A stretch of 64,000 nt of DNA. Origin: Macrostomum lignano (Eukaryota). Both the position numbers and the translations under genes were made by a program. Below, one piece after another: positions 32,201 to 58,837 of this stretch (position 1 is its first letter; every line of letters starts with the position of its first letter). Where the stretch lies: positions 1-64,000 of the forward strand of contig NIVC01001546.1 of NCBI GenBank assembly GCA_002269645.1, given 5' to 3'. A model generated the notes under the pieces. It was given only the letters and a program-made list of their open reading frames with translations. It ran no database searches and was not told where the DNA came from.

Positions 32201-33260
32201 AATATATAGCAAACCCTATGTCAGACCCCTAGCGTTAATTTCACACTTTTAACTATAAAAATCTATTTTCTCACTAAACTTATCTACTAGATTCTTAGAA
32301 CAGATCAAGGACGATTCTTAGAACAGTTCAAGAGCGATTCTTAGAAAAGTTTAATGACGATTCTTAGAACAGTTCAAGAGCGATTCTTAGAAAAGTTTAA
32401 TACGATTCTTAGAACAGGTCAAGGACGATTCTTAGAAAATGTCAAGGGCGATTCTTAGAACAGGTCAAGAGTAATTCTTAGAAAAGTTCAGGGACTATTT
32501 TTAGAACAGATTAAGCGCGATTCTTAGAACTGTTTAAGGCCGATTCTTAGAACAGGTCAAGGGCGATTCCAAAAACAGGTCAAGGGTCATTCATAGAACA
32601 GGTCATGGACGATTTTAAAACAGTTTAAGGGCGATTCTTAGAACAGGTCAAGGGCGATTCTTAGAACAGGTCAAGGGCAATTCTAAGAACAGGTCAAGGG
32701 CGATTCTTAGAACAGGTCAACAGAATTTGAACAGAATAACAAAGCAAACAAGCCGGCACTCACGCCTGCCTTCCTCGTATGAGATTCCAGGCACGCAGGG
32801 TGCAATCGTCCCCAATAGACAGAGCCAGCCGACCCGACTGGTGCACTGCCAGAGATCTGACGGCCTCCTTATGCCGACGCATTGTCCGAAGGCACTCCCA
32901 GCCGCGGCAAGACCAAATCGCTAAGCTCTTATCGCTGCTGCAGCTTAGCAGATGAGAATCGCCAAAGAATGCCAGATCCGTAACTCCGCCTTCGTGCTGC
33001 ATCAACTGGCCCAGCTTGCGCAGATTAGACAGATTGTACAGACTAATCTGTTCGTCTCGAGAGCCGCTGGCTAGCCGGCCATTGGGAGACACAGCTAAAC
33101 AAGCTATCGCCTTCAGGTGCGCCGACGCTTCGGTGAATAGAGGCCGAAGTGTACGCGAAAGCGACGAAGATTGATCAGACGGAGTGTCTGCTGACAGATT
33201 GCTGACTGAGTAACCGGCTAGGCCACCCTCTAGGGTGCCGATCACCAGGACTGGGGCGGA
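29270..33260 (-). CDS. PAK1IP1: PAK1-interacting protein 1 (Mak11-like WD40 ribosome biogenesis factor); 3 exons; no genomic ATG
   Basis: Exons 33260-32764, 30780-30361 and 29543-29270 total 1191 nt with phases 2/2. Motifs: VLVIGTLEGGLAGY, LASGSRDEQISLYNL, HEGGVTDLAF, HQSGRLALSIGDDCTLRAWNLIRGRQA-YALK; acidic/basic tail. Confidence 0.88.
29865..30215. repeat. ~35-bp minisatellite in PAK1IP1 intron 2
   Basis: AAAACCTAAACTAAAACAGCTGCTTTTAGCTCCTA tandem. Confidence 0.9.
30865..31870. repeat. ~39-bp minisatellite in PAK1IP1 intron 1
   Basis: CCCCAGGGTTTCTCAATTATGGCTGCTACCCCCTCCTCTA tandem; explains the many MAATPSSTP ORFs. Confidence 0.92.
32285..32720. repeat. ~21-23-bp minisatellite (GATTCTTAGAACAGGTCAAGGGC) in PAK1IP1 intron 1
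   Basis: Imperfect tandem unit. Confidence 0.85.
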
Positions 33261-33349
33261 CTTGTCACGTGACAGCAATTTTAGTAGCAATAAAATTAGT
33301 TTAATGAGAGATAATGCACTGCTAGATAAGCAGATTGACTTAGGAACAA

Positions 33350-35808: not shown

Positions 35809-37342
35809 CTAAGCCGGCAGCACTTCAGTCTTGAAGTCCTTAGTAACCAGGATGAGCAGGCTGCCGGACTGCGGCACGTCGGCGGCCCCGCTGACCCAGT
35901 TGGCAAGCAGGTCGGCCACAAAGCTCAGCGGAGTCCACTCGCTGAGGCCGGCCTCGCCCATGGCCCGCCTGTTAGCCGGGGTGTCCAGCGTGACGGGCAG
36001 GATAGCCAGGGCGCGGGCGCCGCTGGGTAGGCCCGAGTTTTTCTCGGCAAGCGAGCGAACCTGAGGCCAAATAGGCGAGGTTTGATACAAAATGTGAATA
36101 AGAACACATTGAATGAAAGAAAAGATGAGATAAAGGTAGCGGTTTGAAGAGAAGGAATCCGATCAAGAGAAGAAAATTAAGGGATCAAATGAAGGGCATG
36201 AAGAGATCGGATAAAGGGCATAAGTGGAATGAAAGGATCGAATGAAAGGAAGGGAATGAAGGGATCAAGTGAAGTGAATGTAGGGATCATATGAAAGGAA
36301 TAAAGGGATCAGATGAATGAATGGAATGAAGGGATCAGATGAATGAAGGGAAAGAAGGGATCAGATGAATGAAGGGAATGAAGGGATCAGATGAATGAAG
36401 GGAATGAAGGGATCAGATGAATGAAGGGAATGAAGGGATCATATGAATGAAGGGAATGAAGGGATCAGATGAATGAAGGGAATGAAGGGATCAGATGAAT
36501 GAAGGGAAAGAAGGGATCAGATGAATGAAGGGAATGAAGGGATCAGATGAATGAAGGGAATGAAGGGATCAGATGAATGAAGGGAAAGAAGGGATCAGAT
36601 GAATGAAGGGAATGAAGGGATCAGATGAATGAAGGGAATGAAGGGATCAGATGAATGAAGGGAATGAAGGGATCAGGTGAAGGGAATTAATGGATCGAAT
36701 GGCAGGAAAGGAATAAAGGAATCAGATGAAGGGAATGAAGGGATCATGCGAGAATCATAAAGGGATTCGATAAAGGTCATAAGGGATAAAGGGCATAAGT
36801 AGAATGAAGGGACCGGACAGAAATACTAAAAATGCAGTTGGCACACAGACAGACGAGGGGCCGCTCACCAGGTGATGCACGGCAGCCTTGGCCATGCCGT
36901 AGCCAATCATGCCGGGCGTCGGTCCCAACGCCGGCTGGGCGCCGGTGAGCAGCAGCAGCGAGTCCTTGGAGTCCAGCAGGTGCTTGGCGGCCAGAGAGGC
37001 GGCAATAACGCTAGTCCAGACCGACTGCTTCAGCACCAAGTCGCAGTTGGCAACGAACTTGTCGCTGCCAGCGTCTCCGCCGGCCCAGCCGCCGGCAACG
37101 CAGATCACGGCGTCGAGTTTAGCGCCGTCCAACACTTTGGCAACGTCGGCGGCTACGCCGGCGTGTTGATCGGTTAGACTGCCGCTAGAAGGCGACACGG
37201 CTACGCTAGCATCGGCGTCGGGATTGTCAGCGCCGATGTCTACGCTGCACACCCAGCAGCCCAGCTGCTTGAATTTCATTACGCAGGCTGAGCCAAGGGC
37301 GCCGCGACCGCCGTACACGAGGATTCTTTTAGTTGAGGACAT
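35809..37342 (-). CDS. QDPR: Dihydropteridine reductase (SDR family); 2 exons; ~241 aa
   Basis: Exons 37342-36869 and 36060-35809, phase 0. Motifs: ILVYGGRGALGSAC, ICVAGGWAGG, KQSVWTSVIA, TPGMIGYGMAKAAVHHL-VRSLA, ILPVTLDTPANR. An alternative upstream in-frame ATG lies at 37360. Confidence 0.96.
36150..36750. repeat. 26-bp minisatellite (GAAGGGAATGAAGGGATCAGATGAAT)n in the QDPR intron
   Basis: Tandem unit read directly. Confidence 0.92.
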
Positions 37343-37434
37343 GTTGCTTTTGGCTTGCATGAATTGGGGGGAATTGCTGCTGTTAGTGCCGCCAATGTAG
37401 GTGATTGTAGGAGTTTACTGTCACTGCCACCCAT

Positions 37435-37885
37435 CATCAGTGTCACTCGCCTATCAGTCTGTCACACTTACTCAGTGTCACTCCTCACTCACTCAGTCAC
37501 ACCCACTCAGTGTCACTCTTCACTCACTCTGTCACTCCTACTCAGTGTCACTCCTCACTCACTCTGTCACTCCCACTCAGTGTCACTCCTCACTCACTCT
37601 GTCACTCCCACTCAGTGTCACTCGTCACTCGCCCTGTCACTCCCACTCAGTGTCACTCCTCACTCACTCTGTCACTCCCACTCAGTGTCACTCCTCACTC
37701 GCCCTGTCACTCCCACTCAGTGTCACTCCTCACTCACTCTGTCACTCCCACTCAGTGTCACTCCTCACTTGCCCTGTCACTCCCACTCAGTGTCACTCCT
37801 CACTCACTCTGTCGCTCCCACTCAGTATCACTCCCACTCAGTGTCACTCCTCATTCACTCTGGTCACCTTTCAATCACTCACTCT
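37435..37885. repeat. 35-bp minisatellite (CACTCACTCTGTCACTCCCACTCAGTGTCACTCCT)n upstream of QDPR
   Basis: Tandem unit read directly. Confidence 0.92.
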
Positions 37886-38554
37886 GTCCGGTAAAAACTA
37901 GAAGAAATGATAAAGTCAACGCATTCGACACGATTAAAATAGATAATGCAATTAGCCATATATATAATAATTAATGTATTACCTGCAGATGAATGGTCAC
38001 AAATCAGAATAAAAAATCTATATTACGCGCATATCAGATTCATATCTACTATAGTGGACAACAGCTAACACGAAGGCGCATTGTTTAAATGTTAGCGCTA
38101 AAAGTTACTATTAAAACGAAAGTTGAAATCAATAAAAAATGATTGGAATTATAATTTTGAGAAACGAATTACAACGGCACAATTGTTCAGCGTGGCCATC
38201 TAGCAGACACAGCAGCACTAGCGAAATTCATTTTAATAATAATTATGCCTAAGTCGGGAACAAACCAATACAACTTCAAGGCGGACAGCAGACAGAATGA
38301 AATATTCCAGAACTATAATGAGATAGTACTAAGGTGTCGGTTCATACTACTGGCACACTGGTTGTCCATTTAAACAATCATAATTGCAATTAGAAATTAA
38401 AATTGAAATTCTACACTAAAATAGACAACCGGACAAATTGGATACACCTGGCGAAAGGACACCTTTCTATGCACACGAAATCCTAGTGTAACCTCAACGC
38501 AACTGAAAGCACATTATAACGGGAATGGTGCACATTTATTAAAGCGCGCGGAGC

Positions 38555-40072: not shown

Positions 40073-43000
40073 TTAAAGCTTGTAGAATGTCTCCTCAACG
40101 TCATTGGCGGAGACTAATTGCTTTGATCGAACCACCAGTTCGGGATTTGCCAGAGCATCAGCCGGTGAGCAGTCGGCTAAGCCGGGATCAGCCACAGTTG
40201 CCAGGGCAGGGGCGCCAGAGCCGTGCTGGCGCCTGGCCTGCTGGCTGTGCAGATAGCGAGCCGTACGCCTGGCAGGCATGCAGCTGTAGGCAGCCTGGGT
40301 GTCTTCCTCTGATAGGCTGCGGCGTGGGGTGGGGACTCTTGCGTGAGGTTCAGGCTACTCTAACTGAGGATCTGGGAGGCTGGCCCAGCGACTGACACTC
40401 TGGGAGGCTGGCCCAGCAACTGAGGATCTGGGGGTCGCCAAGCGACTGAGGATCTGGGAGGCTGGCCCAGCGACTGAGGATCTGGGAGGCTGGCCCAGCA
40501 ACTGAGGATCTGGGAGGCTGGCCCAGCGACTGAGGATCTGGGAGGCTGGCCCAGCAACTGAGGATCTGGGAGGCTGGCCCAGCAACTGAGGATCTGGGAG
40601 GCTGGCCCAGCAACTGAGGATCTGGGAGGGTCGCCAAGCAACTGAGGATCTGGGAGGCTGGCCCAGCAACTGAGGATCTGGGAGGCTGGCCCAGCAACTG
40701 AGGATCTGGGAGGCTGGCCCAGCAACTGAGGACCCGTGAGGGTGGCCAAGCAACTGAGAACCCCATCAAAGCTCTCATATAGTTTAACATTAGATAAAAC
40801 AAAAAACCAATGTAGAAAGTACGAATAAAACCGACCAGCCCTACCTGCTCTCATTCTCCAATTTTTCAACGTTAGTCTTTAACTGCATAAATTTGAGATC
40901 AAATTTTCTCAAAAATTCGTTAGAATCCATCTCGCTAAAATCTCTGTTGCTAGCAAAAGTTTTCGACCTGGTGACGGATGCAGAAGAAGCCGATTTCATC
41001 GAGTGGTTTGGCTTAGCCGAACTGTTAGCAGCCGCAGCAGGCTGAGCAGGTGGCTCATCATCGGCCACAAACTGCTCAAAGCTGACTTCCGCCTCAACCA
41101 CAGTCGCGGGCGGAGTCGGGTTCCTAGAAGAAGTGCCCGAGGCGGAACCGCTGCGACTGCCAGCTGCCGGCCCAGAAAGCTCGGGCACTTTGATGCTGGA
41201 CTTCAACTGTAGACCATCGTTGCTCCACAAGCCGTTGAGTCTTTTTAGCTCTTCCACCTGAGTGGAAAATTAAGATCATTGAGTTAGGCAGTCAACTAAC
41301 AGCCAGCAAGGAGACAAATTAAGAAGTAAAGTTCAGTGGCCCTTGGCCATAGAGGCACACAGATATGCAAGAAAGTATAGATGTAACTTCGATTAATGTT
41401 CTGTACCAAAGTTCGACAAACGTTTTTATAAGGGCCAGATAAAGAATATACTTCATAGTCGCTGGTCAGATGAGAGTGGAAAGGAGAGGGAATAGATGAG
41501 ATATGAGAGAAAGGAGAGAGGGGAGAGGTGAACCTTTGTGTAGGCCAGAGTTTCAAGTAGGCCAGATTACTCTTGTGAAGTTTTAAAAGACCCAAGGGCC
41601 AGATAAAGAGGGGTTTTGTAGGCCTGGCCACATATAGCTAAATACTATTATTTCAATATACAATATCCATATTTTTAATTCATATATTATCTAAAATAAT
41701 AGAAACTTTTAAAAATTTTGGGATTGCAAGAATTCTATCAACTATCAAATTTGAAGCACCTATCTATATAGGCCTAGAGTAGGAGTCAGCAAACTTTTTA
41801 GAGCAAGGGCTAAATAGCCCAACTTTGAAAGGCTTAGAGGCCAATAACAAACAAATGAAAGACCATACTTGCATCATGCCAATATTTATTTTGTTTTATT
41901 TAGTCTTAATTTAGTCTAGAACTAGACTTTCAACATAGGTTAAGCGTAAGAAAGATAAGACCAAGAGAAAAGAGGGTGAAAGCCTAGGGGGCAGATGGAA
42001 TGCTAGATCTAGCCCTGGGGTTGCAAGTTACTAACTCCTAGCCTAGTCTTTTACTGTACAGTTAAGCAGTTTCTATAGGTCAAAAGGGGCTTTAGAATTA
42101 AAATTAAAGAAATTAATTTTTTTTATATTGAACTTTTTTACTAATACTATAGTTGGCACCCTAGTTTTTATTATAAGACCTAGTGTACCAAATAGCATAA
42201 TGATTCTTATGACAAAAAATCTTATCTATTCTTTATAATCTTTATAATATATGTACTAAATAGCAAATTAAACTTAAATTTCCTATAAGCTTTTCATATA
42301 TTTGTTGTTTATTTGCTATATTACTTAAATATTCTATAAATTTAAAGTTATATATTCATTTTGTTTTTTTATAAATTTCAATATTTTGTAATACTTTCCT
42401 ATTTTTTATGAGGGATGTCCCAGAAGTAGTGTCACTTTTGCTTGCTTCCACAAGTACTAATGTGAGTTGAAAAAAAATAATATGCCTTAAAAGTTAGCAG
42501 CTTAATTTAGCTTTCATGCCATGAAAGCCTGATTTTTATAAGTGCTTCCTGCTGCAAGCAGCATGCATTTGTTTGCATACCCTTAGCCATAAAAATACAC
42601 ACTGCATAGTGCTTCTATGCTTACTCAAAAGAAAGCCACAAGTATAGCTGATCAAGCATAGAGTTGCAAGATAGCAGCTGCAAGATTTGTTCCAGTCATG
42701 GACCCTGGCAGTATGGACCCTAACATGGACCCTAACATTCACTCTATAGAATGGCAGAGACATGCAGTTTTTACACTTTAGAGTCCTAGTCAGAAATGCC
42801 CTGAAATTCCCAAAAACCTGACCCACATTCACAGTCTCAATTCCATTAGTTGACAAACAGTTTACAGGTGGATCAAATAGCTCGAGACTGGCTATAGATA
42901 TCAAAGGCCACCTTTGGGTAAGTTGGCAAAACATACTGCTAGCCAGCCTTGAACTGCTGTCTTGCAACTCTGTGCTTGATCAACTGTACTTGTGGCTTTT

Positions 43001-46000
43001 TTCTAAGTGAGCATAGAAGCACTATGCGGTGTGTATTTCTATGGCTAAGGGTATGCGAACAAATGCATACTGCTTACAACAGGAAACACTTATACTCATA
43101 AAATTTGGACTTTTGTGGCATGAAAGCTAAAATAAGCCGCTAATTTTTAAGGCATATGATTTTTTAGCACACATTAATAATTATGGAAGCAAGCAAAAGT
43201 GACACTACTTCTGGGACATCCCTTGTACAATAGCCTAACAAATAAAGGGGATGTCAACTTAAGCACCAGAATGGAGCCCAAAGTTCAGCTCTGGACCAAA
43301 CCGACTGCAATTGATAACTTGTCGGCCCAGACGACTAGAATCGCCGAGACATCCCATCCCGTTTCAAGTGATGAAGCTCTATTCAATTTGAATATCGCAT
43401 TAGCGGGTGTATTTTATTTCAGCTATTATATATTGTTTGCATTGTAATATTTCCGTCATTTATTTTTTCTGGATTTTAGAGAATGTTTTCGCAGTTTTGA
43501 TTTGACCACTTTAGGCCTAAGATTTTCGATACTGTGCATCAAGTATTTGTAGCATTATTTTAAGTGATATATTTTAAGTGATATATTAATGAAGTTAAGG
43601 TTTTTGTCAGTTTTTCTTTCTTAGTTTTATGACAGGTGCAGATTTGTTGCAGATTGTGTTTTATACTTGCTAGTAATGTCCGATTTTACTTGCTCTCAAT
43701 ATGGTCATCAATTCAGCAAAGCAGCCAATTTGAACCGACATCTCGAAACGACTAGATGTGGTCGCTGCTCATCTGAATCGTCTGGAGCCTTCGTGCCTTC
43801 AAGAAACGCACGAGAGGCGCTTCAGTTTCTTGCGGTCGGTGGTAAGCATGTGAAAGTTTTTTTGAACCCAAACCTTTTTCCACGAACCGCAAATGAGAAG
43901 GAGTTCAAATGTATTTGCGGTCTTAGCTATAGTGATTTCGATAGCTTCTCAGAAATGTTACCAGAAGTATCTCGCCTTCGTATTTTGACAAAGCCGTCTC
44001 AAATATTTTTGTACCTGAAGAAGCTTCGCCAAGGTTGCAGCTTTCAATCATTAGCTTTCGATTTCAACATTTCTGCCCAAAGAGCATGCAACATTTTTTG
44101 GGAGATTGCCAAGGAGCAGTACCTACGGGATCCATATCAACCGAGGTCGAAAGCGTCGACTCCGATTCAGACTCTGCTTGAGGAAAATGTAGTACGCGAT
44201 CAATTTATTCTCGGTGTATTTCACACACTACTCAAAGGCAAGAAGCTTGTTCTTCTAGTGGGTGATCATACTTACTTTTATCTCCCTAAGAGCAGCTCAC
44301 ACCACACGCAAATTCGAACTTACTTTTCCGGCAAGAAAATGAATGTGAACAAAAAAATGGCGGTTGTCAACAGTAGAGGAAAAATTATCTACACCGCTCC
44401 CCTTACTGCCACTATCTCGCCAACAATGGGCGATGGGAATTTGACTGCAATGCAAGTTGACATGGAGGCTGAAGGACTAATAGAGCCCACTTTGTTGCGC
44501 ATTCTATGCTCTGTACAGAAAGATTATCATGTTATTGGCATTTTCGACAAAGGTTACAGCCACCAGCTTTGTTCACCAACTTCGGTTAACTTCCACGACT
44601 TTATAGAGACTAATAGTAAAGGCTGCATGACGCTTCTATTTCTGACCAGTCCAGGTGATCGAGTTCTAAACGAGCAGTTTGAATTTGTAAACAATGAGGC
44701 TCCTGTTGGTGACCGATCAATACCAGGAAAGCTTACATCAATCGAAGCAAATACAAGTTGCTGCACTATGCTTTTCCGTTATCTCGTAGAATGTAGCTTT
44801 GCTGCAATCAAGCAGGACAAATGCATAAATGAGCGACAGGAGCCGTACCAATGGCTACATGCCCCAGAGTTTACCGAATGCAGCCAGCTCAATGTTGTTA
44901 TTGAAAACTCCATGGCAAAATTCAACCGTTCGCATCCAGGATTTCAAGCTATAAGGAGTCTGCCGCCGTCATGGTCAGATTGCTCCATGTTTGAATATGG
45001 ATGGAACTTTGCTAAACGTCTTTTCATTGCGAATGAGCTAGACAAAATTGAGCAACTTGAGTACAATTGCGATTTGACTCGAATACCAACGAGTTCTATC
45101 CAAAAATGGACAGCAGTGGATCCCCTGGACCTTGAAAGTTCAGGGTTCCCCAGCGTTGACGAAAGAAATCTGGAAGAGCTTAGCATCGGCCCATACCACG
45201 TTCTTCAGTCAAAACGCTACATCGAAAATGTCAGAGTTCATGAGGTGCTCAGTAGCTACGCTGGAGACTCGTGGCGCGATTTCGAATTTTTGATTTCTGA
45301 ACTGCCAAGCCATTTAAAATGCTGGAAGTTTCATCAGCGAGCGCCACCAAAGGGGTGGAGCAGTAAGTTTGGAGAATGGAGGCCATCTTGGATATATTTA
45401 GCCATTCTTCATTCCCGTCATTGGTCAAAAACTTACTGAGTTGTCCTTCGTATTTGCAAAACTGCAAGTGGTAACCGATTCGGATTTCGTGACTCGGGGC
45501 TGCTGCATCTGCATGGCTACTTTTCATCCTCAAAGGCCGGAAGCAGGACAGCAGGGTGTGACAGTCATGTTATGGCTGTGGTTAGAATGCTAGGCTGTTA
45601 TGCATATCACCCCGAAAGCTACAACATGTGCAGCAGCAGCTTCTGATTTATTGACAGTGCTTTGCCAAAAGCACTGATTGCCAATCTTTACAATGATCAA
45701 TCTGGTGGTCATCCAGCTCCAAATGCACCTCGCAGAGACAGTGCTGAATTGCAGCAAGATGAACAGAGGCACAGTTCAAATGCTACTGGTTCACTGAATT
45801 CGCCGAAGAAGTTATTTGGGTTGCCAAATAATGGCCTGCAGTGCAACACAAATGCAGCAGTGCAATTGTTTCTCTGCCTGCATTCTAATGGATGCATTTT
45901 AAAAGAGACTAGCAACGACCAAGTCCATCGAGAGCTGCTTCATCATCTGACGGAGATGCAACAGTGGTCTGCAATAGTCACTCCACTGTTAATGGCAGTT

Positions 46001-49000
46001 TGGTTGCAACATCCAGATTCATTTCAAACAAATCAGCACCATTGTGTCAACGAATTTGTTCAAACGCTTCTAATACATCTGGAATTTCTGTCATCAGAGG
46101 CTTTCACAGAATTTTCACTCATTCAAACTTGTCGAGATTGCCAGCGCACAAGTGCTGAAGTTCCATTGGCACAATCGATAACAGTGATTTGCATTCCTCT
46201 CTGTAAGTTTGAGTGCTCAATTGTCAGTTTAGGCAAAATCTTCTGCGCTTTTGTCACTCCTCAAGTAGTGAAATGTTTGGACGCCAATTGCTTGGGCAAT
46301 TGTAATCAAGAGATTGTAGTAACACCTGGAAAGTTTACCCTGATTTATCTTGATTGTGCTAGTATGGATGGCCACCTAAAGCTTCAAACTCCTGTAAGCT
46401 TTTCTTCAAGGTCAGGGGGTGTTTCTACACTTGGTAAGCCAGTGGCCACAATATCACACCATGGAAACCGATTGAAATTGGGACATTTCACAGCAAGCAT
46501 ACTGAGCTGTGTGTGGACGAGAATTGACGACATGAAAGTTATGTCAGACTATAACCCGTTCGTACGTGAGCCTGAGTGCATCGTGCTTGTTGCACTTTTA
46601 AACTCGTAAAAGCATTTTTAGCGAAAATACAATTGTTTTAAGCAAGTGTACTGTACGTTTTGTATTGCAGATTTTAAAGGACATGCAGATTAAGAAACAA
46701 TGTCATCTTACGCATTCTTTATGTACCATAGGTTACATGTGAAGATAATTCAGACTGACATCAAATAACAAAAGCTTAGCATTAGTTCTTTCAATTTCTT
46801 TTAGACTCACAATTAGCTAAAAATTGGAAGTATTTTTTACTGAAGCAAAAAACTTAAACCCAAAAACCGTTTCTTAGGACTGAGAAACTTTTGCAATTAT
46901 GATTTTAATAAGCTATGCGTGAGAGGCATTACTTTATTTGCTTAAAAACGTGTGCTGCTTTGCATGACATGCTTTGTTTTTATTACTTTGATAACTTGTA
47001 CAGCTTTGCATGATATGCTTTGTTTCCATTACGTCATAACTTGTACAGCCTTGTGTGATATTCTTTATTTTACCAATATACATGGTTTCGGTTTATCGTC
47101 AAAAGTTCTGCTTACTAATAACCAAATGAATTTACCAGTTTATTTTTTCAAACTGAGTTTCCAGATTGGCATTTTTAACACTGTTTTGATACGAGCAAAT
47201 CATTTTTATTACTTAACAATCAATATATAATAGCTGAAATAAAATACACCCGCTAATGCGATATTTGAATTGAATAGAGCTTCGTCACTTGAAACTGGAT
47301 GGGATGTCTTGGTGATTCTAGTCGTCTGGGCCGACAAGTTATCAATTGCAGTTGGTTTGGTCCGGAGCTGAACTTCGGGCTCCATTCCAGAGCCTTAAGT
47401 TGACATGAGATCCCCATTTTATCCCCTGGGACCCCAAGGAAGGGATCCGGATGGGATGTCTCGGCGATTCTAGTCATCTGGGCCGACAAGTTATTGATTG
47501 CAGTTGGTTTGGTCCGGAGCTGAACTTTGAGCTCCATTCCAGAGCCTTAAGTTGACATGAGATCCCCATTTTATCCCCTTTATCCCCTGGGACCCCAAGG
47601 AAGGGACCCGGATGGGATGTCTTGGCGATTCTAGTCATCTGGGCCGACAAGTTATTGATTGCAGTCGGTTTGGTCCGGAGCTGAACTTTGGGCTCCATTC
47701 TGGTGCTTAAGTTGACATCCCCTTTAGGTGAATTTAATCAAAATCATTTTTTACTCTTTGATAGCTTGTTGACTTATTATAAATGTATAGTTAAGTTCTT
47801 GATATATTTTTATTTATAACTTTTTTGTTACCATAGTATATATTTCAAAAATATTAAAATTAATATGGTAAATAAAGTTGCTATTATGAAAATTTTCAAA
47901 ATGACATTTGCCTAGGGCCTAGTCTTACTCTTGAATTTTATATATATGCTAGAAAATTGTAGCATACAATGGACAAAAATGGTTAGCATAAAGTATCTTG
48001 CTTATGGAACAATCTGCTAGAAAATTGTATCACAGAGCCAGCATATAGCATAGCAAAAGACTAAAATGTCATAATATAAGATAGGGTCCTAGATTGTTGT
48101 AATTCAAAAAAAGTTTTTTGTCACAACTATAAAAAGGTCATTTATTATTGTAACTATAAAAATGTCCTGTATTATTGCAATACCTGTTTATTATATTTTA
48201 AACTATCTCTACATATAAAAATCAAAACTCTGTCTGTGTGTCTGTGTGTGTATCTGTCTGTGGACAATTTTGATTGCTATGGACTCCCAAACCGCTCAAC
48301 CAAATTACACCAAACTTTACACCCACCCTAAACTTACTACGGAGAATGTCTTAGGCTACCTTTAAATTTCCTAGACTCAAGTTTTCCTACCTAAAAGTAC
48401 AAAAAACTGCTCAAAATACGCGATTTTTTCACTAAATCCTCCATAGTGCCGCTCCACTTTTACCGATTCTCTTCAAATTTGACACAGACAATCTTCAACT
48501 ATTTTAGCACAATTATGTAAAATTTAAAGTCTCAAAGTTAATCCTGAGCGGTGCTGTGCACTTTTAAAATTAGGCTGTTTTTTCAGCGTAGCAACCACCC
48601 CAACCTCCGCCCGCCTCTCTTTCCCGATCTGGGCCCAGATGTGTAAAAGGGGTTTCAAAATTGACTAACTTTCAGCTGCCATAAGTTTGCTCCACGTAAA
48701 GCGATTGACTTTAAACTTGACACAATTCTTTATTGACTCATTCTCTATCTAAATGTAAAGTTTCAACTCTGTAACTCAACCGAAAAAGAAACTGTAAGCA
48801 TGTGAAGTTTGTCTGCTTTTTCTGTTGTTTATGCCACTCACTCACTCATTCCCCCAGCCCAGACGAAGGGTCAGGCAATAGGGCTGAATGTACATAGCAA
48901 ATGTACAGTGTTTTAGAATAACTTTTTAATAGCCTTCTCTGTACCCCCGCGCGTGGAGAGGCTACGTTTAGCCATGACAGTTTAGTGAGAAATTCTAACC

Positions 49001-50392
49001 ACTGTCCTCTGTATTGGTACTACGAGTATTGGCAAACTCTGCAGCAGTTTAACAGTGGATGGCAAATCGAGGGAATCCAGCATCCCCAGCACGGTTTGTA
49101 AAAGCGAAAGATTTATGAAAAGGCGATGCAATGCAATACAACCCTACTAAATTAGTCACAGTCACACCATGGAAATTTAAGCTTTCTCTTAAAAATACTT
49201 TGAAATTTAATTGGCCTCCTAAGAAATGCGTATTTCCTTGGTTGTTAGACTGCTGCAGACTGTGGTTGTGGAGCTGGAGAATGGAGATACACAAATTCCT
49301 CTCAGGGCTGCTAATTGGCCAGAAAGATGACGTGATTAAAGCATGAGAAATGATAACCATGATAGTACTACGTCCTATGATAGTACTTTCGAAGCAGGGA
49401 TCGGTAGATTTTTATCTCAAAGGCCAGATAAAGAATCCAGCTCATTGTTGCGGGCCAGATGAGAGTGAAAAGGAAAAGGAATAGACTATTAGAGAGGGAG
49501 GAGGGGCGAGAGGGGGATAAGAGAAAAGATAAAAGATAACAGGAGAGACGAGAGGGTTGAGGAGAGAGCAGAGAATATGGGACGAAGAAGCGAGAGGAGC
49601 GGAGAGAGAAGGGAGAGGAAATAGTAGAGGTGAGAAGATGGAGAGAGAAGAGAGGAGAGATGAGACAGGATCGATCAGAGAGGAGAAAGGAAGGAGAGAT
49701 GATAGAGTAAAGGGAAGAGGAGGAGAGAGGAAAGAAATGAGATTGTAGAGATGAGACAGATGAAAGGAGAGATGAGAGAGTAAAGATGAGAGATTAAAAA
49801 GGTGAGAGGAGAGTTCAGAGAGACGAGAGAAGATAATAGAGAGAGAGTATAGAAGAGGGAAGAGAAAAGAAGAGAGGAGTAAGGAAAGAGAGGAGTCAGA
49901 AGAGGGGAAAAAAGAGTACACAGGAAAGAGGAGAGTAAATATGACAGAAGAGCGAGGGGGATGAGAGAGCAAAGATGAGAGTGAACAGACGAAGGAGAGA
50001 TGAGAAGTGAGATAAGAGAGATAAAGGAGGAGAGAGTGGAGAGAGAAGAGAGAAGACAAGAGAGGGAGACAGTATAGAAGAGGGAAGAGAAGAGAAGAGA
50101 AGAGGAAAAAGGAGAAAGGAAAGAGAGGAGTCAGAAGAGGTGAAAGAGAAGAGTACAAGTGAGAGAACGTATAAGAGAGTAAAGATGACAGATGAGAGAG
50201 CAGAGATGAGGGTAAACAGACGAGAGATGGGAGAGTAGAGAGAACAGAGGAGAGATAAGAGAGAAGAGATTACAGAAACTAGAGGAGAGAGGAGAGACAG
50301 GGAGAGAGAAGTGAGTGAGGAGAGAGAAGAGGAAAGAGGAGAATGAAGAGGGCAGAGAGTAGAGAGGATAAGAGAGATGGGAGAGGAGAGAT

Positions 50393-50436
<44 letters not shown>

Positions 50437-52605
50437 AGAGCAGAGCAGAGAAAAACAGAAGAGATAAGAGAGAAAAGATAAAAGAAGAGAAAGGAAAGAT
50501 GAGAGAGCAGACGAGAGAGAAGAGAGGTGAGGGAAGAGACGAGAGATGAGGGGAGAGAGGAGAGATAAAACAAAAAAAAGAGATGAGAGGAAAGAGAGAG
50601 AGGAAAGAGTAGAGAGAAGGTAGAGACGAGAGAAAAGGGGGAGAGAGGAGAGGAGAAAGAGAGGAAAGGAGAGTCGAGGGACGAGAGAGAAGAGAGGAAA
50701 CAGAAGAGAAGATACAAGTTGCAATCGATCCAAGGTACGTAGGGAGAGTCAAAGGCAGAGGCCAGAGTTTGCCAATGCATGTTTTAGAGTCAGACAGACA
50801 TTGCCCGACATTCTGCGCAGCATGTACCCCAGCCAACAATATCAAATGTTTGCCTCAAATCCTAATTTTACACGAATGTACTTCATTTTATGTTTACTCT
50901 ATCCTACTAACTATTAACAAGTTTTTGTTTGAGTATGACCTCAGATCTCAGAGCACATGCACAAATATTTCCGGGAATCGGAATTCCCCGGGTTCAAAAT
51001 CCACGGGTTTCAACAGCTTGTAATAAATATTTATTTATGAAATAGCTTAAGCATCTTTGATCTTGAAAGAAACTTAATATTTGATATATTAAAATAAATT
51101 TTAAATTAAAAAATGATTGAAAACCTAATAATATTATAAGACATTGCATTAATAATATTAAATATATGTTCTAACATTATTCATTTCATTCTATGCTTTT
51201 TAAAAAGCCTTATTTCAAATCTGCACAAAAATATTATTTGTTTAAATGTTGTGAACCACAAAAATATTTTTGTGACCAATCTTAGTAATAAACAGTTAAG
51301 AATTTTTGTATAAATAAAAGGCCATAACAGGCCAAAAAAAATTATTTATTTATAAGCTAGCAAATTCACTTAGCAAACTAATAGAATTGTTCTATATTAA
51401 AATTGCTAATTGCAGTATTCAAGAGACTTATTCATTTCTTTAGAGTATCAAGTCATATATTAGGAGTATTAGAAATCCACTGAAAGCAAGTATTGCCTCA
51501 GGGCAATAATAACTATAGAATAGTAGAATTGCTTTACCTTTAAGGCAGGAGAAACTGCCTAAGGGCATGAAATTACTTAGAAGCTATGACCCTCTGATCC
51601 TAGGAATATCTAAGGCTAAGAGAAAACCACTATAGGAGCCATACATGCCTAAAACCTATCCAACCCATCCAAACTGGATGGGTGAAATGGCCACTGGCCA
51701 AGGTAAGTAACAAAATCAAAAACAAAAAATTGGGAGAAGAAAGAAAGGAGAGAAAGAGAAAAGGAAAAGAAAGGAAAGAGTAGAGAGAGAGGGGAAGAGG
51801 AGAGAAAAAGAAAGAAAAGAGAAAAGGCAAGAAAAGTCATACAAAAAAAATTAGGTCACAATTGAGAGGAACTAAGTTGCAATTGGGAGAAACTAAATCA
51901 CAATTGGGAGAAACTAAGTTGCATATCTGGACAAAACTACATAAGTCACACCAGACAGGTAAAATTTTAAGGTTGGGCATGTATGATAAAAGCCAATACT
52001 CAATAGTGAGAATAGCTATAGTGCCTTAGACTGCTCAGGCTAGAAATGCAGTACATATACATATATCACCAATAGATAAATACACACTACCAATAAAATA
52101 GTTATAAACAAAGTACATTCATACACTACCAATAAAAGTTAAGTAACAACAGCAAGATCATCTCAGAGGGAAGAAGAAGCCCTGCAACATTTTAATGGCA
52201 TCAGTGTGATGTGATCATTAGGTCTGAAGACAAAAGTTTGGCCCTTTGACAATTATTTAAAACAGATTGGTAAGTATTTATTATATAACATAAAATATTA
52301 TATGCCTAACAAAAAATGCTCATGCCTAGGTTCTCAAGTTCTTACTCTTAGGCCCTCAAGCATATTCCATATAATGCTAGCAAGCACTAAAAAAATAAAG
52401 CAATAAAGCAATAACAACTTACTGTTGTTTCATATTTAATTGCTAAAGACACAAGAGTGTCACTGGGTTTAACTTTGTGGAGTCTTGTCCTCTGAGATGT
52501 TGTTGAAGCACTTTTTAATGTTGCACCATATGTCCGAATTTTCTTAACTGTATTTTTTGGGACAGTTGATCCAGAAGTAAACAATATATCTTTTTCATCA
52601 GCCAT
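40073..52605 (-). CDS. LYSMD1/2: LysM and putative peptidoglycan-binding domain-containing protein (LYSMD1/2-like); 3 coding exons; 11.2-kb first intron
   Basis: Exons 52605-52423, 41257-40845 and 40337-40073. The LysM domain is split across intron 1: RTYG...HKVKPSDTLVSLAIKYETT|VEELKRLNGLWSNDGLQLKSSIKVP. FLRKFDLKF segment; C-terminal EETFYKL. The exon 3 acceptor was chosen by frame and is less certain. Confidence 0.85.
40362..40760. repeat. 28-bp minisatellite in LYSMD intron 2, same family as the HBS1L intron 1 array
   Basis: GAGGATCTGGGAGGCTGGCCCAGCAACT tandem. Confidence 0.92.
42409..43225. mobile_element. Tc1/mariner-type MITE with ~280-bp TIRs
   Basis: TA|TGAGGGATGTCCCAGAAGTAGTGTCAC ... 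GTGACACTACTTCTGGGACATCCCTTG|TA; long imperfect inverted arms; TA duplication. Confidence 0.8.
43245..47724 (+). mobile_element. PIF/Harbinger-ISL2EU-like DNA transposon, 4.48 kb, with TIRs and a TA flank
   Basis: TA|AAGGGGATGTCAACTTAAGCACCAGAATGG ... CCATTCTGGTGCTTAAGTTGACATCCCCTT|TA. The left end 43245-43440 is inverted relative to 47220-47724, where the terminal module is triplicated. Confidence 0.88.
43676..46609 (+). pseudogene. DDE_Tnp_4-type transposase + SWIM-like finger + USP/UCH (peptidase C19) domain in one frame, broken by two TGA codons
   Basis: N-terminal Zn-finger remnant; HTH LKKLRQGCSFQSLAFDFNIS; DDE residues VGDHTY, IFDKGY, LVECSF; TGA at 45437; SWIM-like KAGSRTAGCDSHV; TGA at 45644; USP boxes GLPNNGLQCNTNAAVQ, HHGNRLKLGHFTA, WTRIDDMKV. 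ORFs 43667 and 45662 are in the same frame (difference 1995 nt). Confidence 0.8.
48206..48985 (+). mobile_element. Probable non-autonomous Helitron
   Basis: A|TCTCTACATATAAAAATC...(GTCT/GTGT)n 5' end typical of such elements; GGCTA-CGTT-TAGCC hairpin then TTAG|T, an imperfect CTAG. Confidence 0.45.
49440..50720. repeat. Cryptic GA-rich low-complexity expansion (~1.3 kb)
   Basis: Purine-rich + strand with a (GA)n core; explains the Leu/Ser ORFs on the minus strand. Confidence 0.9.
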
Positions 52606-54227: not shown

Positions 54228-57200
54228 TGTAGCATGCGCAGGCAGGCAGTTCGGGCACCTAGTTTGCACTCCGTGACCCCCACCCAGCCTATCCACTTCC
54301 CTCTGCTCGAGCACATCCCAACGCGCACTCAATGAACCGGAAATCTGTGACCAGACAATAAATATACAGGCACAGCCACATTCTATTTCTCCACCTTTTT
54401 GAGTGGCTAACTAACACTCGCAATAACCAGCCAGAGTTGCTCGCTACATTGGCGTCGCAAGCCAGAACCCAATGGCGCTACTACAGCTACAGCCGCCATC
54501 CGCATTCAGCATCAGTGCTGACCCCCACACCGTCAGCAAGCGCTGGACAGAGTGGGCCACCACACTAAAGCGATTCCTGGCAGCATCAGGAATCTTGGAT
54601 GACGCCCAGAAGCAGGAAATCCTCCTGTACACCGCGGGAAAAAAGGTTGCAGACATCTTTAAAGAGATCTCAGAGTCGCGTCCCGCCACTGATCAGCTGG
54701 AGCAGCAAACGCTCGACTCACTCATAGCGGCGCTAACTCAGCACTTTCAAAGACGCGACAATGTGGTGTTCACCCGGTACCAATTCCGCCAGTGCACGCA
54801 GCTGGACGGGGAAGCCATCGACAGCTGGTACAACCGACTGTGCAACGCGGCTGAGGCCTGCCAGTTCGGCGAGCTGCGTCAGTCCCTCATCCGCGACCAG
54901 ATCGTCGCCTGCTGCCGCAGCGAATCCCTCCGAAAGCGGCTGCTCAACGAGCCCAACATCAGCCTCCCCGAGGCCCTCCAGCTGGCAAGAACAAACGAAG
55001 CAGCCAGCCAGCAAGCGGCCATCATGGAGCGCTCGGCAGCCGGACCAGCTGAAGAAGTGCATGCGGCTCGCGACAAGCGCCCCGCCAGGCGCCCGCCAGC
55101 CAGCCCGGCCGACAAATGCCTGAGGCGCGGAGAGCCCGGCCACCGCACATTCAACCGGGCCCAAGGCAAGCGCTGCAGCAACTGCGGCAAGCTGCACCAC
55201 CTGGCGAAGGCGTGCTTAAGCGGCCGCGCACGCATCAACATGGCAGAGCCTGAGCCAGAGGAACCAGCAGTGGCGCACCTGGCGGAGGCGGTATTCTCCA
55301 GCCTCGACCCCAGCCGCAAAAGCGCCACCTTCAAAGCGGTCATCAATGGCTCGAACGTACCCGTCCTGATCGACAGCGGCGCGAGCTGCAACGTGCTCAG
55401 CCAGCAGACCCTTCGCCTAACGGGAGCACCCCAGAGGGCGCTTCAGCCCACGCACACAAGGGTCTATCCTCTCGGAGCAGCGAGGCCCCTGACACCCGCC
55501 GGCCAGATCACTCTGCACACGAAGATCAACGCCAACTCGGAGAGAGTGCGCTTCATCGTCATCAGAGAAGACTGCTTCACAATTCTAGGTCGCGAAACAA
55601 GCACGCAGATGGGGATGCTGAGGGTCGGACCGCAGGCCGAGACAGCTCTCACCGCCGGACTGACACCAGCAGTCAACGACCAGCACCTTCCGCAAGACCT
55701 GCGAATGTCATCGATCATAAAGGAGTTCAGCGACAGGTTTCAAGGAATCGGCTGCATCAAGGGCGTCTCAGTCAGCATCCAGCTGAAGGAAGAAGCGGCG
55801 CCAGTCTGCCACCCTCCGTCTCGAGTTCCGGTGCATCTTAGAACCGCCGTGGAAAAGGAGCTGAAGGACCAGCTAGCAGCCGGCATCCTGGAGCGAGTGA
55901 CGGGGCCCAGCGCTTGGAGTTCACGCATGGTGGTCGTTCCAAAGGCCTCGCCAGGCGAGATCCGCATCACGCAGGACCTGAGGGACGTCAATAAGTACGT
56001 CATCCCAGAAAAACAGCCAATACCGACATTCGAAGAAGTCACCGACGAGATGGCCGGCTCCACCTATTTCTCCGAACTAGACGTTGCCAAGGCCTTCCAC
56101 CAAATCGGGGTCAGCGAGGAGTCCCGGCAGCTGCTCACTTTCTCAACGCCTCTGTGCCTGCTCCGCCTCAAGCGCCTTTGCATGGGATTTACCTCAGCAT
56201 CCGAAATCCTACAGCGCGTCATGACATCTATCCTGAGCGGTTTGAGAGGCGTGCGGTGGGTCCACGACGACATCATTATCTTCGCCAGCACCATAAAAGA
56301 GCACAACGAGAGGCTGCGCAACTACCTTGACAGGCTGCGCCAACACAACGTGACTCTGAACCCCCGCAAATGCCGCATTGCAACCCAGCAGGCCGACTTC
56401 CTGGCCATGCACCTCTCGGCAGCCGGAATCCAACCGACTGAGGAAAAGCTGGAGGCTGTGGCCAACTTCAAGCGACCAGAAAATGCAACGGAGGTGCGGT
56501 CCTTCCTCGGGCTCGTCACATTCGTAGCCCGCTTCATCCCAAACCTCGCCGACAAAGCGAGGCCACTTCGAGAGCTGACCAAGAACAGCGCGAAATGGTC
56601 GTGGGGCCCACAGCAAGCCTCAGCCTTTCAGTCAATCAAGCAGTCGATCGCTCACAGCACGACGCTTGCCTTCTTCAACAAGAACTGCGAGACCAGGTTG
56701 ATCGTCGACGCCAGCCCTACCGGCCTCGGGGTGATTCTCGCCCAGGTGCAACCTGGCGACCTCACCAGGCCAATCGCCTACGCCAGCCGCAGCCTCAGTG
56801 ACACCGAGCAGCGCTACTCGCAGACAGAGAGGGAGGCGCTGGCCGTCAAATTCGGCTGCCTCAAGTTCCACCACTACCTTAGCGGCTGCCCAAAGTTCAA
56901 GGTCATCACCGACCACAAGCCGCTGGTCAGCCTGCTCAGCCCCGGCTCGCGGCCCCCGCCGCGGATCGAGCGCATGGCACTTCGGCTGCAGGATCTCCAC
57001 TTCGAAGTCACCTACCAGCCGGGCGCAGACAACCCAGCAGATGTCCTGAGCCGCCAGCCACGTCCAACACCGCCGAACAACGAGGGCGAGGATCTCGACA
57101 CGGCTTACATCGCAATGACAGCACAGGCAGCAGCGCCGAACAGCATCAGCCTCGACACGATCAAGGTTGCCGCCGCAGGCGACAAGGCGATCCAAGCCGC

Positions 57201-58837
57201 CGTATCCGGGCTCCGGTCCCATCGGTGGGAACTCGATAGCCACGACACGCGCAGCCTGCACGGCTTGCGGCACGAGCTCTCACAACACGATGGACTCCTG
57301 CTCAAAGGGCACCAAATCGTCGTTCCCGCCATTCTGCGCTACCGCTGCCTGCAGCTGGCGCACCAAGGCCACCTGGGTGTCCAGAAAACATTGGCAAGCC
57401 TCCAGACAAAGGTCTGGTGGCCCTCAATTCGGGCCTCCGTCGAGAACTTTGTAAACTCCTGCCTCAGCTGCAAGGCCTGCACGAACACAGCCGAACTGAA
57501 GGCAGCCCCACTCAAGCCGACTGAGCTGCCGCAGGGGCCCTTGCTAGAGCTGGGCCTGGACTTCCTGGGACCCATCAGAGGCCACATGCTGCTGGTGTGC
57601 ACCGACTACTTTTCATGTTTCCCACTGGTACAGACGATGTCGGGGTCGACAGCGGCAGCTCCGGTCATCCGAACCCTCCGCCAGTGGTTCAGCATGTTCG
57701 GCCAGCCAGTCCAGATCACCACCGACAACGGCCCGCCATTCTCGTCCGCAGAATTCAACGCCTTCTTGCGCAGCCAGGGCGTCCACCACCATCGGACTAC
57801 GCCGTTGCATCCCCAAGCCAACGGACTCGTAGAGCGATGCAACCGAGGCCTCAATAAGGCAATCAGAGCGGCGATCCTGGAAGGCAGCGACTGGCAGGTG
57901 GCACTGGACGACTACCTGGCCGCATACCGGTGAACACCGCACGCATCAACCGACATGGCCCCAGCCGACCTGCTATTCGGCCGACAGCTCAACGACACGA
58001 TCCCCAGCTTGCGCCACTCCCGTCCTGTTGATGCCAGGCGACGGACCGTCCGCGGCCACGACTCTAGGGCCAAGGAGCGGATGAAGGCCTTCGCCGACAG
58101 CAAGAGGGGCGCCACCGACCACAGATCACCGAAGGCGACCTCTTACTCCGCCGGCTCACCAACCGCAGCAAGACCGACCCCTTCTTCGAGGTCTCGCCAT
58201 GGACCGTGACAAAAGTCCACGGCAACACCCTGCAGCTCTAGAGGGGCGGCCAGAGGTGCTCCAGGCATGCCACCCACATCAAGCGAGTCTCCCAGGCAGC
58301 CGACGAGTGGCCGAGTGGCCCCGGGGAACGCGACAGCGGACAGAACAGCCCGCCGGATGAACCAACCGGCCTGCCCGAGCCAACCGGCGACCAGGACGTC
58401 CCGCTCGCCAACAGGCCGCACCCCCGACAGGCCAAGGAGACGCCGAAACGCTACGAAGAGGGCGACCGGCGAAAGGCTCCGAAAATTTGACAGCTGGCGG
58501 AACAGCAAGGACTGATCATTGACTCCAATGACTGACACTGATTGCTGGATCGCGCGTAACATGAACCCAATGTTGGACCCAACCCCACCCCGGGTTCCAA
58601 TCCACCAGACGAGGGATGTAGCATGCGCAGGCAGGCAGTTCGGGCACCTAGTTTGCACTCCGTGACCCCCACCCAGCCTATCCACTTCCCTCTGCTCGAG
58701 CACATCCCAACGCGCACTCAATGAACCGGAAATCTGTGACCAGACAATAAATATACAGGCACAGCCACATTCTATTTCTCCACCTTTTTGAGTGGCTAAC
58801 TAACACACGCAATAACCAGCCAGAGTTGCTCGCTACA
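54228..58837 (+). mobile_element. Ty3/Gypsy LTR retrotransposon (Mag-like), 4610 bp
   Basis: 221-bp TG...CA LTRs at 54228-54448 and 58617-58837 with one mismatch seen; 5-bp TSD CTCAC; PBS-like TGGCGTCG; purine tract GAGGGA before the 3' LTR. Confidence 0.96.
54472..57933 (+). CDS. Gag-Pol polyprotein (gag, protease, RT, RNase H, integrase), ending at a premature TGA
   Basis: CSNCGKLHHLAKAC knuckle; LIDSGAS protease; ELDVAKAFHQI and VHDD RT motifs; IVDASPTGLG RNase H; HQGH...CLSC, LDF, TDNG, NGLVER integrase. The integrase C-terminus (TPHAST...LLFGR) continues past the TGA with a frameshift near 58125 and a TAG near 58240. Confidence 0.93.
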   Translation: MALLQLQPPSAFSISADPHTVSKRWTEWATTLKRFLAASGILDDAQKQEILLYTAGKKVADIFKEISESRPATDQLEQQTLDSLIAALTQHFQRRDNVVFTRYQFRQCTQLDGEAIDSWYNRLCNAAEACQFGELRQSLIRDQIVACCRSESLRKRLLNEPNISLPEALQLARTNEAASQQAAIMERSAAGPAEEVHAARDKRPARRPPASPADKCLRRGEPGHRTFNRAQGKRCSNCGKLHHLAKACLSGRARINMAEPEPEEPAVAHLAEAVFSSLDPSRKSATFKAVINGSNVPVLIDSGASCNVLSQQTLRLTGAPQRALQPTHTRVYPLGAARPLTPAGQITLHTKINANSERVRFIVIREDCFTILGRETSTQMGMLRVGPQAETALTAGLTPAVNDQHLPQDLRMSSIIKEFSDRFQGIGCIKGVSVSIQLKEEAAPVCHPPSRVPVHLRTAVEKELKDQLAAGILERVTGPSAWSSRMVVVPKASPGEIRITQDLRDVNKYVIPEKQPIPTFEEVTDEMAGSTYFSELDVAKAFHQIGVSEESRQLLTFSTPLCLLRLKRLCMGFTSASEILQRVMTSILSGLRGVRWVHDDIIIFASTIKEHNERLRNYLDRLRQHNVTLNPRKCRIATQQADFLAMHLSAAGIQPTEEKLEAVANFKRPENATEVRSFLGLVTFVARFIPNLADKARPLRELTKNSAKWSWGPQQASAFQSIKQSIAHSTTLAFFNKNCETRLIVDASPTGLGVILAQVQPGDLTRPIAYASRSLSDTEQRYSQTEREALAVKFGCLKFHHYLSGCPKFKVITDHKPLVSLLSPGSRPPPRIERMALRLQDLHFEVTYQPGADNPADVLSRQPRPTPPNNEGEDLDTAYIAMTAQAAAPNSISLDTIKVAAAGDKAIQAAVSGLRSHRWELDSHDTRSLHGLRHELSQHDGLLLKGHQIVVPAILRYRCLQLAHQGHLGVQKTLASLQTKVWWPSIRASVENFVNSCLSCKACTNTAELKAAPLKPTELPQGPLLELGLDFLGPIRGHMLLVCTDYFSCFPLVQTMSGSTAAAPVIRTLRQWFSMFGQPVQITTDNGPPFSSAEFNAFLRSQGVHHHRTTPLHPQANGLVERCNRGLNKAIRAAILEGSDWQVALDDYLAAYR

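Follow-up and report, generated by a model that had tools for sequence, protein, structure and literature searches.

We examined 64,000 nucleotides of Macrostomum lignano DNA (assembly GCA_002269645.1, contig NIVC01001546.1, positions 1-64,000 of the forward strand), referred to below as the 64-kb window. At 43247-47722 the window holds a DNA transposon of 4476 bp with long terminal inverted repeats (TIRs) at both ends. Its interior consists of one long reading frame, broken by two TGA codons, in which a DDE transposase is followed by a SWIM-like segment and a ubiquitin-specific protease (USP, peptidase C19). A TIR-bounded DNA transposon at about 43245-47724 had been proposed in an initial annotation, and the termini found here bear this out. 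The features of the element are listed below with the evidence for each. L001 is the JGI metagenome contig carrying the nearest relative, protein P0001, and P0009 is another relative.

43247..43449, forward strand: left TIR (~200 nt), beginning GGGGATGTCAAC and preceded by host AAA at 43244-43246; inverted-repeat pairing, terminal 21-mer.
43676..46609, forward strand: single transposase-SWIM-like-USP frame, 978 codons, two TGA breaks; open reading frame (ORF) reading, conservation with L001 and other relatives.
43685..43759, forward strand: N-terminal C2HC/C2H2-type zinc finger, degenerate (CSQYG, second Cys replaced by Tyr; P0001 has CLRCG); family alignment.
43985..44101, forward strand: HTH_Tnp_4-like helix-turn-helix, aa 104-142; Pfam E=8e-6, 25.8 bits.
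44264..44791, forward strand: DDE core with D197 (GDHT, 44264-44266), GDGNL, D291 (FDKG, 44546-44548) and E372 (VEC, 44789-44791); conserved alignment columns.
45437..45439, forward strand: first in-frame TGA, CGA (Arg) in L001; alignment with L001.
45515..45595, forward strand: degenerate SWIM finger (GYFSSSKAGSRTAGCDSHVMAVVRMLG), with other residues at three Cys ligand positions of the family motif; family alignment, Pfam on relatives.
45644..45646, forward strand: second in-frame TGA, AGG (Arg) in L001 and Arg in P0009; alignment with L001 and P0009.
45809..46606, forward strand: USP (peptidase C19) with Cys box GLPNNGLQC (C723, 45842-45844), zinc-ribbon CRDC / CLDANC, His box GHF (H937, 46484-46486) and IDD (D951, 46526-46528); Pfam, profile, AlphaFold2, Foldseek.
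47207..47722, reverse strand: right TIR (inner arm 47207-47387, then a threefold tandem repeat), followed by host TTT at 47723-47725; inverted-repeat pairing, terminal 21-mer.

The boundaries are marked by a terminal 21-mer, GGGGATGTCAACTTAAGCACC, of which the window has exactly two copies, at 43247 on the forward strand and at 47722 on the reverse strand (chance expectation 0). The left arm pairs both with the outermost part of the right end (47610-47726, 117 nt at 96%) and with an inner stretch (47207-47387, 181 nt at 92%). The right end is built up from repeats: a unit made of the terminal ~115 nt and a ~40-nt spacer is present three times in tandem, starting at 47297, 47449 and 47610 (periods of 152 and 161 nt), and the exact terminus is found only in the outermost unit. 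Within 47297-47722 the inner two units finish ...GTTGACATGA, not ...GTTGACATCCCC. Possible origins of the triplication are replication slippage and aborted or nested insertions.

The left end is preceded by host AAA and the right end followed by host TTT, which when rejoined give AAATTT; by our own rough estimate, the chance of finding both in a window of 57% A+T is ~5e-4. At this single copy the left flank reads ...CAAATAAA up to the terminal GGGG, and on the right the terminal CCCC runs into TTTAGG. Since the host bases extend the complementarity of the TIRs (TAAA/TTTA), the ends can equally well be read as AAGGGG termini flanked by a 2-bp TA duplication. A foldback or MITE-like structure lies at 42404-43230, with inverted arms of ~275 nt (42404-42677 and 42954-43230) that are 85-89% complementary; 16 nt separate it from the left end of the transposon, which therefore adjoins another repeat.

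Does the interior of the element hold one gene or two? The two ORFs that it contains, 43667-45439 and 45662-46609, share one frame, which runs from the ATG at 43676 to the TAA at 46607-46609 with the TGA codons at 45437-45439 and 45644-45646 as its sole in-frame stops; no second ORF of at least 100 aa was found between the TIRs. Here the initial annotation was right, as it was in stating that the USP part has no Met before its Cys box: there is none between the second TGA and that box. Searching 1.84 billion representative proteins by phmmer, with the read-through protein as query, returned 105 hits. The nearest relative, P0001, is 49% identical over the transposase, and when L001 is translated beyond P0001, the homology carries on in frame. 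At the first TGA the window reads SKTY*VVLR and L001 SKSHRVLLR; at the second the window reads SSSF*FIDSALP and L001 PSRRFVDTRLP. L001 has a TGA of its own, aligned with a TGG (Trp) of the window, and one frameshift. As the window and L001 are each open where the other is closed, their common ancestor must have been open throughout. The first TGA is a copy-specific nonsense mutation, probably due to CpG decay, and the alignments identify both stops as private mutations of the window copy.

The segment between the two TGAs is conserved coding sequence when aligned with L001 and other relatives. We also considered a SWIM motif read in another frame by way of two compensating frameshifts (RGCCIC in frame +1), which is ruled out by the conservation of frame 0 in L001 and the relatives. 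L001 ends in the linker ahead of the USP. The same lineage is continued by P0009, a 362-aa fragment from a source of the same kind that overlaps the tail of L001 (a 17-aa stretch is identical) and then runs into the USP (Pfam UCH, E=1e-14). A single ancestral protein of ~980 aa, as initially suggested, is thus upheld by Arg codons at both TGAs in L001, by the continuation of P0009 into the USP and by intact fusions elsewhere. The initial annotation had asked whether other copies are open at these two points; among the relatives, L001 carries CGA and AGG, and P0010, P0031, P0033 and P0059 are uninterrupted. With two Arg-to-stop mutations and one zinc-finger Cys replaced by Tyr, the window copy is, as judged from its sequence, non-functional.

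The transposase part makes up the N-terminal ~670 aa of the fused protein. P0001 begins with a C2HC-type finger (CLRCGKCF...H....C), and the Tyr at the second Cys of this finger in the window copy reads as a further sign of decay. In the catalytic core, D197, the GDGNL motif, D291 and E372 occupy conserved columns in the family alignment, so that the retained DDE triad (GDHT/FDKG/VEC) noted at the outset holds. The profile searches proposed at the outset gave a mixed answer for the transposase. HTH_Tnp_4 scores 25.8 bits on the window copy (E=8e-6), just below its cut-off of 27 bits, while DDE_Tnp_4 has no match on this copy, although close relatives P0006 and P0007 pass its cut-off. Among the 101 phmmer hits covered by our Pfam scan, 28 match DDE_Tnp_4, 23 match HTH_Tnp_4 (E<=0.001) and 19 match DDE_Tnp_1; the more distant homologues show full-length DDE_Tnp_4 matches overlapping DDE_Tnp_1 (PF01609). 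We assign the transposase, on its motifs and profile matches, to the IS5/PIF-Harbinger/ISL2EU/Spy (PHIS) type of DDE enzymes.

Several relatives have an N-terminal extension of 360-590 aa with C2H2 fingers, which the window element lacks. On three contigs, an upstream ORF of 454-592 aa with C2H2 fingers and an acidic low-complexity tail precedes the transposase-USP ORF (L007 202-1944, L008 115-1893, L002 1568-2932). In P0002, P0004 and P0005 the N-terminal extension is fused to the transposase, and the upstream ORF of the P0010 family is its homologue. The upstream C2H2 ORF and the transposase-USP ORF may be one protein split by a stop or an intron.

The USP occupies the C-terminal ~270 aa, separated from the SWIM-type finger by a ~70-aa linker. 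The Pfam UCH profile (PF00443), the check proposed for about 45662-46609, matches 45647-46606 above its cut-off (25.5 versus 23.9 bits). When either the transposase half or the USP half was searched with phmmer against PDB sequences, no match was obtained. We then relied on an alignment of nine transposon-linked USP regions, which served both as a profile and as AlphaFold2 input. The profile matched USP2, USP46, USP12, USP15, USP36 and USP21 in PDB over the whole domain, with E-values from 5e-23 to 1e-20. The AlphaFold2 model reached a pLDDT of 82.8 and a pTM of 0.84 (a single-sequence run gave a pLDDT of only 33, and the nine-sequence run was used instead). With this model, the top 50 Foldseek matches in PDB were all USPs, including USP18, USP12, USP2, USP46, USP35, USP21 and USP1 (E down to 7e-17, TM 0.66-0.77). 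The triad that the initial annotation had read from GLPNNGLQC, GHF and IDD is retained, and C723, H937 and D951 are conserved in every USP-bearing relative (P0009, P0010, P0031, P0033, P0059, P0066), D951 being aligned with Asn574 of USP2. Two zinc-ribbon cysteines are likewise conserved in the USP-bearing members. Both the alignments and the predicted structure indicate that the C-terminal part is a genuine USP/C19 domain with an intact Cys-His-Asp triad. We predict it to be catalytically competent, and infer from its sequence a deubiquitinase function.

The segment between transposase and linker had been called SWIM-like, and this description stands by descent only. It reads SSSKAGSRTAGCDSH in the window and SSSKAGSRTAGCDCH in L001, the backbone of the motif being kept while three Cys ligands are replaced. 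The window thus has S-S-S...C-D-S-H where the zinc-binding signature is CxCxnCxH, and Pfam SWIM (PF04434) has no match on this copy at E<=1. In the relatives the motif is recognisable. Patterns of the type C-x-[CS]...R...C-x-H or C-x-C...C-x-H occur in 34 of the 105 homologues (25 of them with the full CxCxnCxH), typically as CxCKxGxRTxGCCSH. Pfam SWIM was the only or best family match in four of the seven relatives' segments submitted, once above the cut-off (20.6 versus 19.6 bits). These motifs and matches argue that the window segment is a degenerate descendant of a SWIM finger. The ligand loss is common to the window and L001, and hence a trait of the lineage rather than decay of the window copy; zinc binding was probably lost in this lineage.

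Uninterrupted transposase-USP proteins, 955-1639 aa long, account for four of the 105 phmmer hits:

P0031, 955 aa: uninterrupted transposase-USP, covering query 76-969 in a single alignment.
P0010, 1048 aa: residues 5-658 transposase, 748-1032 UCH; most of the 20 members of its cluster measure 1048-1050 aa.
P0033, 1119 aa: residues 823-1089 UCH; carried by 19 Tara/ENA contigs.
P0059, 1639 aa: C2H2 fingers ahead of the transposase, UCH behind it.

The domain order of these fusions is the same in relatives with only 22-49% identity over the transposase. The sources of the relatives are almost all marine or environmental metagenomes and Logan assemblies; one distant homologue is from a springtail. 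A word-index homologue search gave one hit with the read-through protein and two with an 18-sequence alignment; this index misses the transposase-USP family. A pattern search of the metagenome collection with a two-sequence alignment matched 341 sites, none of which was confirmed as a related locus.

Other relatives (P0002, P0004, P0005, P0006, P0012) end shortly after the SWIM finger, and on the two contigs checked, L009 (P0004 cluster) and L010 (P0002 cluster), no USP was found downstream. A neighbour-joining tree built on 483 core columns interleaves USP-bearing with USP-less members in a clade with 87% bootstrap, set apart from classical HTH_Tnp_4 + DDE_Tnp_4 proteins. On this pattern the USP could be ancestral and have been lost repeatedly, or have been gained several times. 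In the P0010 family, comparing L015 with L007 and L008 gives a dN/dS of 0.16 in the transposase and 0.42-0.47 in the USP (the L007-L008 pair, with too few differences, was not used). The shortfall of non-synonymous changes in the USP has a p of about 0.01 by our own rough normal approximation. By these ratios both halves are constrained in this family, the USP less tightly.

Taken together, the Arg codons of L001 at the two stops, the uninterrupted fusions in diverged relatives and the purifying selection in one family argue that the fusion is ancestral and that the window copy is dead. We consider it very probable that the element is a non-functional copy of an autonomous cut-and-paste transposon of the PHIS type, whose single gene once encoded one transposase-USP polypeptide of about 975-980 aa. 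This protein would have comprised, in order, an N-terminal zinc finger, HTH_Tnp_4, an RNase-H-like DDE core, a SWIM-type finger, the ~70-aa linker and the USP/C19 domain. The N-terminal finger and the helix-turn-helix would bind the TIRs, and the DDE transposase would excise the element and insert it at AAATTT-like sites with no or minimal target duplication, like Spy. The USP would act in cis or locally, brought to the site of transposition by the transposase to which it is tethered. In the version that we prefer, it would strip ubiquitin from the transposase or the transpososome and so protect them from ubiquitin-dependent degradation or extraction. Alternatively, it could edit ubiquitin on histones, chromatin or repair factors at the double-strand break. 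The roles suggested in the initial annotation, resistance to turnover and removal of H2A/H2B ubiquitin, are likewise speculative.

Several observations weigh against this interpretation. One genome copy is the source for the termini, the target site and the lack of a target-site duplication, and a TA duplication fits it equally. DDE_Tnp_4 has no direct match on the window copy, and HTH_Tnp_4 falls just short. The USP evolves faster than the transposase, and its dispensability in at least some lineages follows from the interleaving of USP-less with USP-bearing members. Finally, we searched the relatives' contigs L002-L014 for TIRs, element boundaries and flanking AAA and TTT and found none that was convincing, these contigs being too short or single-locus. 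The mobility of the relatives is therefore deduced only from copy number and architecture.

This last point leaves some room for domestication. Could the fused protein be a host gene, a transposase-derived deubiquitinase of which the window copy is a pseudogene? The relatives' contigs lack recognisable TIRs, and those of P0033 are 99.5% identical across Tara samples, as expected of a single-copy gene in an abundant organism. However, the relatives' contigs are too short to include element ends, and the window copy itself is bounded by TIRs of ~200 nt with an exact 21-nt terminus and AAA and TTT flanks. The DDE triad is conserved throughout the family, and the P0010 cluster is made up of numerous full-length variants, distinct but nearly identical and each on its own short contig, which is how repeats assemble. 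We regard a host gene as improbable.

A two-gene element, with the transposase as ORF1 and a separate USP as ORF2 expressed by splicing, re-initiation or programmed TGA read-through, is what the window copy would suggest if taken alone, since two stops part the transposase from the USP and both are TGA, the codon most prone to read-through. However, the stop positions are not conserved (Arg at both in L001, continuous frames in P0010, P0031, P0033 and P0059), the intervening segment is conserved coding sequence, and a separate USP would have no Met ahead of its Cys box. TGA also appears to be an ordinary stop here, because the other long ORFs of the window have no in-frame TGA. We find two genes very hard to defend.

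Least credible is a one-off capture, in which a fragment of a host USP gene was fused in frame by chance (transduplication) and has no function: DNA transposons do often capture host fragments and the USP is weak against Pfam (25.5 bits), but the idea is refuted by the intact fusions at 22-49% transposase identity, with their common domain order and conserved catalytic residues, and it sits badly both with purifying selection on the USP in the P0010 family and with the whole-protein phmmer search, whose USP matches were almost only transposase-linked proteins or fragments, not cellular USPs.

How far does the single transposase-USP gene extend beyond this locus? A bolder proposal, which we hold only tentatively and think rather unlikely as a whole, is that the element belongs to a widespread, unrecognised clade of Spy-like PHIS transposons in animals and marine eukaryotes, with an active and integral C-terminal USP inherited from a common ancestor and repeatedly lost, and that ubiquitin removal at the transpososome or the break is a functional step of transposition. 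If true, no earlier family of cut-and-paste transposases would be known to have a USP built in, and the clade would offer a tractable way to ask why so many unrelated transposons recruit ubiquitin and SUMO proteases. Ginger1, MULEs, Helitrons and Zisupton, which belong to unrelated superfamilies, carry OTU or Ulp1 proteases, and to our knowledge nobody has shown why. The USP would add a third protease fold of the ubiquitin pathway, here fused directly to a PHIS-type DDE transposase. Recurrence of the fusion in diverged lineages, together with conserved catalytic residues and signs of purifying selection, strengthens the case for control of ubiquitin-type modification as a general requirement or advantage in DNA transposition. 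The intact P0010, P0031 and P0033 (955-1119 aa) would suit the cell-based assays that already exist for Spy. There is also a practical consequence for annotation, as transposase-USP ORFs risk being labelled host 'ubiquitin carboxyl-terminal hydrolases'.

The rest of the window contains further mobile elements, repeats and host exons. An intact 1898-aa Helitron-like ORF lies at 1049-6745 on the reverse strand, with Helitron_like_N, DUF6570 (a marker of HLE2/Helentron), PIF1 helicase and Pif1 2B domains; near its N-terminus is an OTU-like GDGNCFF motif that Pfam does not call at E<=0.001. An LTR retrotransposon contributes an intact pol-like ORF of 1153 aa at 54472-57933 on the forward strand (aspartyl protease, RVT_1, RT_RNaseH, Integrase_H2C2, rve). 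Minisatellite-like tandem arrays at 16014-17159, 30843-31448, 37355-37974, 40350-40869 and 49442-50845 give long spurious ORFs with repeated peptides, for example Ser/Leu-rich ones, and are very likely non-coding repeats. Host gene exons, all on the reverse strand, are found at 26591-28385 (an EF-Tu-type GTPase, HBS1/eRF3/eEF1A-like), 32760-33290 (a WD40 protein) and 36755-37360 (dihydropteridine reductase, QDPR, 55-65% identical to many invertebrate and vertebrate QDPRs, with no close match, which points to an animal host missing from the protein collection).

Among known systems, PIF/Harbinger and ISL2EU (Han et al. 2015, PMC4482050) have in common with the element an HTH_Tnp_4-type motif (just under the cut-off on the window copy) followed by a DDE_Tnp_4-type catalytic domain, the motifs DxTx, GDxxL, DxGY and (V/I)Exx(F/H), and a preference for AT-rich targets. 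Harbinger, however, has a Myb/SANT ORF2 and a 3-bp TWA duplication, both absent from the window element, whose flanking trinucleotides are TAA and TTA. ISL2EU differs by an AT duplication within A-AT-T, a THAP domain and a YqaJ ORF2, whereas the window element has no AT duplication, no THAP or YqaJ match and no second ORF. The PHIS-family domain tables of the same paper contain no UCH, ubiquitin, peptidase or SWIM entry. A Zisupton/KDZ identity, considered for the combination of SWIM and protease, was rejected.

The closer resemblance is to Spy, whose insertions fall between AAA and TTT and leave no target-site duplication (Han et al. 2014, PMC4122938; Diaby et al. 2024, PMC11304231). Spy and the window element share a single long ORF with an N-terminal DNA-binding region ahead of the DDE core, a transposase part of ~670-700 aa, TIRs of highly variable length beginning GG, host AAA and TTT at the element ends (a TA duplication being equally valid here) and a distribution that includes invertebrate animals. 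However, the published spacing is D(79-80)D(44-62)E and ours D-94-D-81-E, a comparison in which the published triad assignment may differ from the present one, and the terminal consensus GGANNNNG is not matched by GGGGATGT. The two Spy papers describe no USP and make no mention of SWIM or C2H2 features. The element may be called Spy-like in its insertion site; as the likeness is drawn from published descriptions only, and neither the DDE spacing nor the GGANNNNG terminus agrees, we do not file it as Spy. Supplementary Table S1 of PMC11304231 lists Hyvu-Spy-1 of Hydra vulgaris with a single 963-aa ORF and 102 copies, without comment from the authors; the other intact Spy ORFs that we consulted in the table, from insects, reach at most 716 aa. 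The surplus of ~270 aa in Hyvu-Spy-1 is close to the length of a USP domain, and by this analogy USP-bearing Spy elements may have gone unnoticed in the literature.

The initial annotation knew of no described PHIS transposase-USP fusion. For PHIS elements we found none either, but fusions of this general kind have been reported. One sentence in Bao, Kapitonov & Jurka 2010 (PMC2836005), citing Gladyshev & Arkhipova 2009, mentions Trichomonas vaginalis XP_001314237.1, a protein with transposase_11 (PF01609) and Peptidase C19. As in the window element, an IS4/IS5-type DDE transposase would be joined to C19 in one protein, a likeness drawn from the description alone, and distant relatives of the window family also score on PF01609. 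This protein is from a protist, comes without a described element structure and was absent from the 105 phmmer hits. UCH domains also occur in Helitron-like HLE2 elements, and OTU domains in Helitron-like elements (PMC11417382). A full-text literature search combining transposase, PHIS or Harbinger with USP, UCH or C19 gave no further precedent beyond the Trichomonas and Helitron-like cases. The joining of a transposase to a ubiquitin hydrolase thus has precedent, while the window family and its architecture appear to be undescribed.

More broadly, OTU or Ulp1 domains are found at the C-terminus of Ginger1 transposases, and Ulp1 in MULEs (PMC2836005). These elements and the Helitron-like ones share with the window element a ubiquitin or SUMO cysteine protease in or beside the transposition enzyme, at a conserved position and with its catalytic residues retained. 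They differ in the protease, which is OTU or Ulp1/C48 in Ginger1 and MULEs and USP/C19 here, and in the transposition enzyme, which is integrase-like, Mutator or rolling-circle there and of the PHIS type here. In the passage concerned, Bao, Kapitonov & Jurka 2010 (PMC2836005) suggested a wide involvement of the ubiquitin pathway in transposition.

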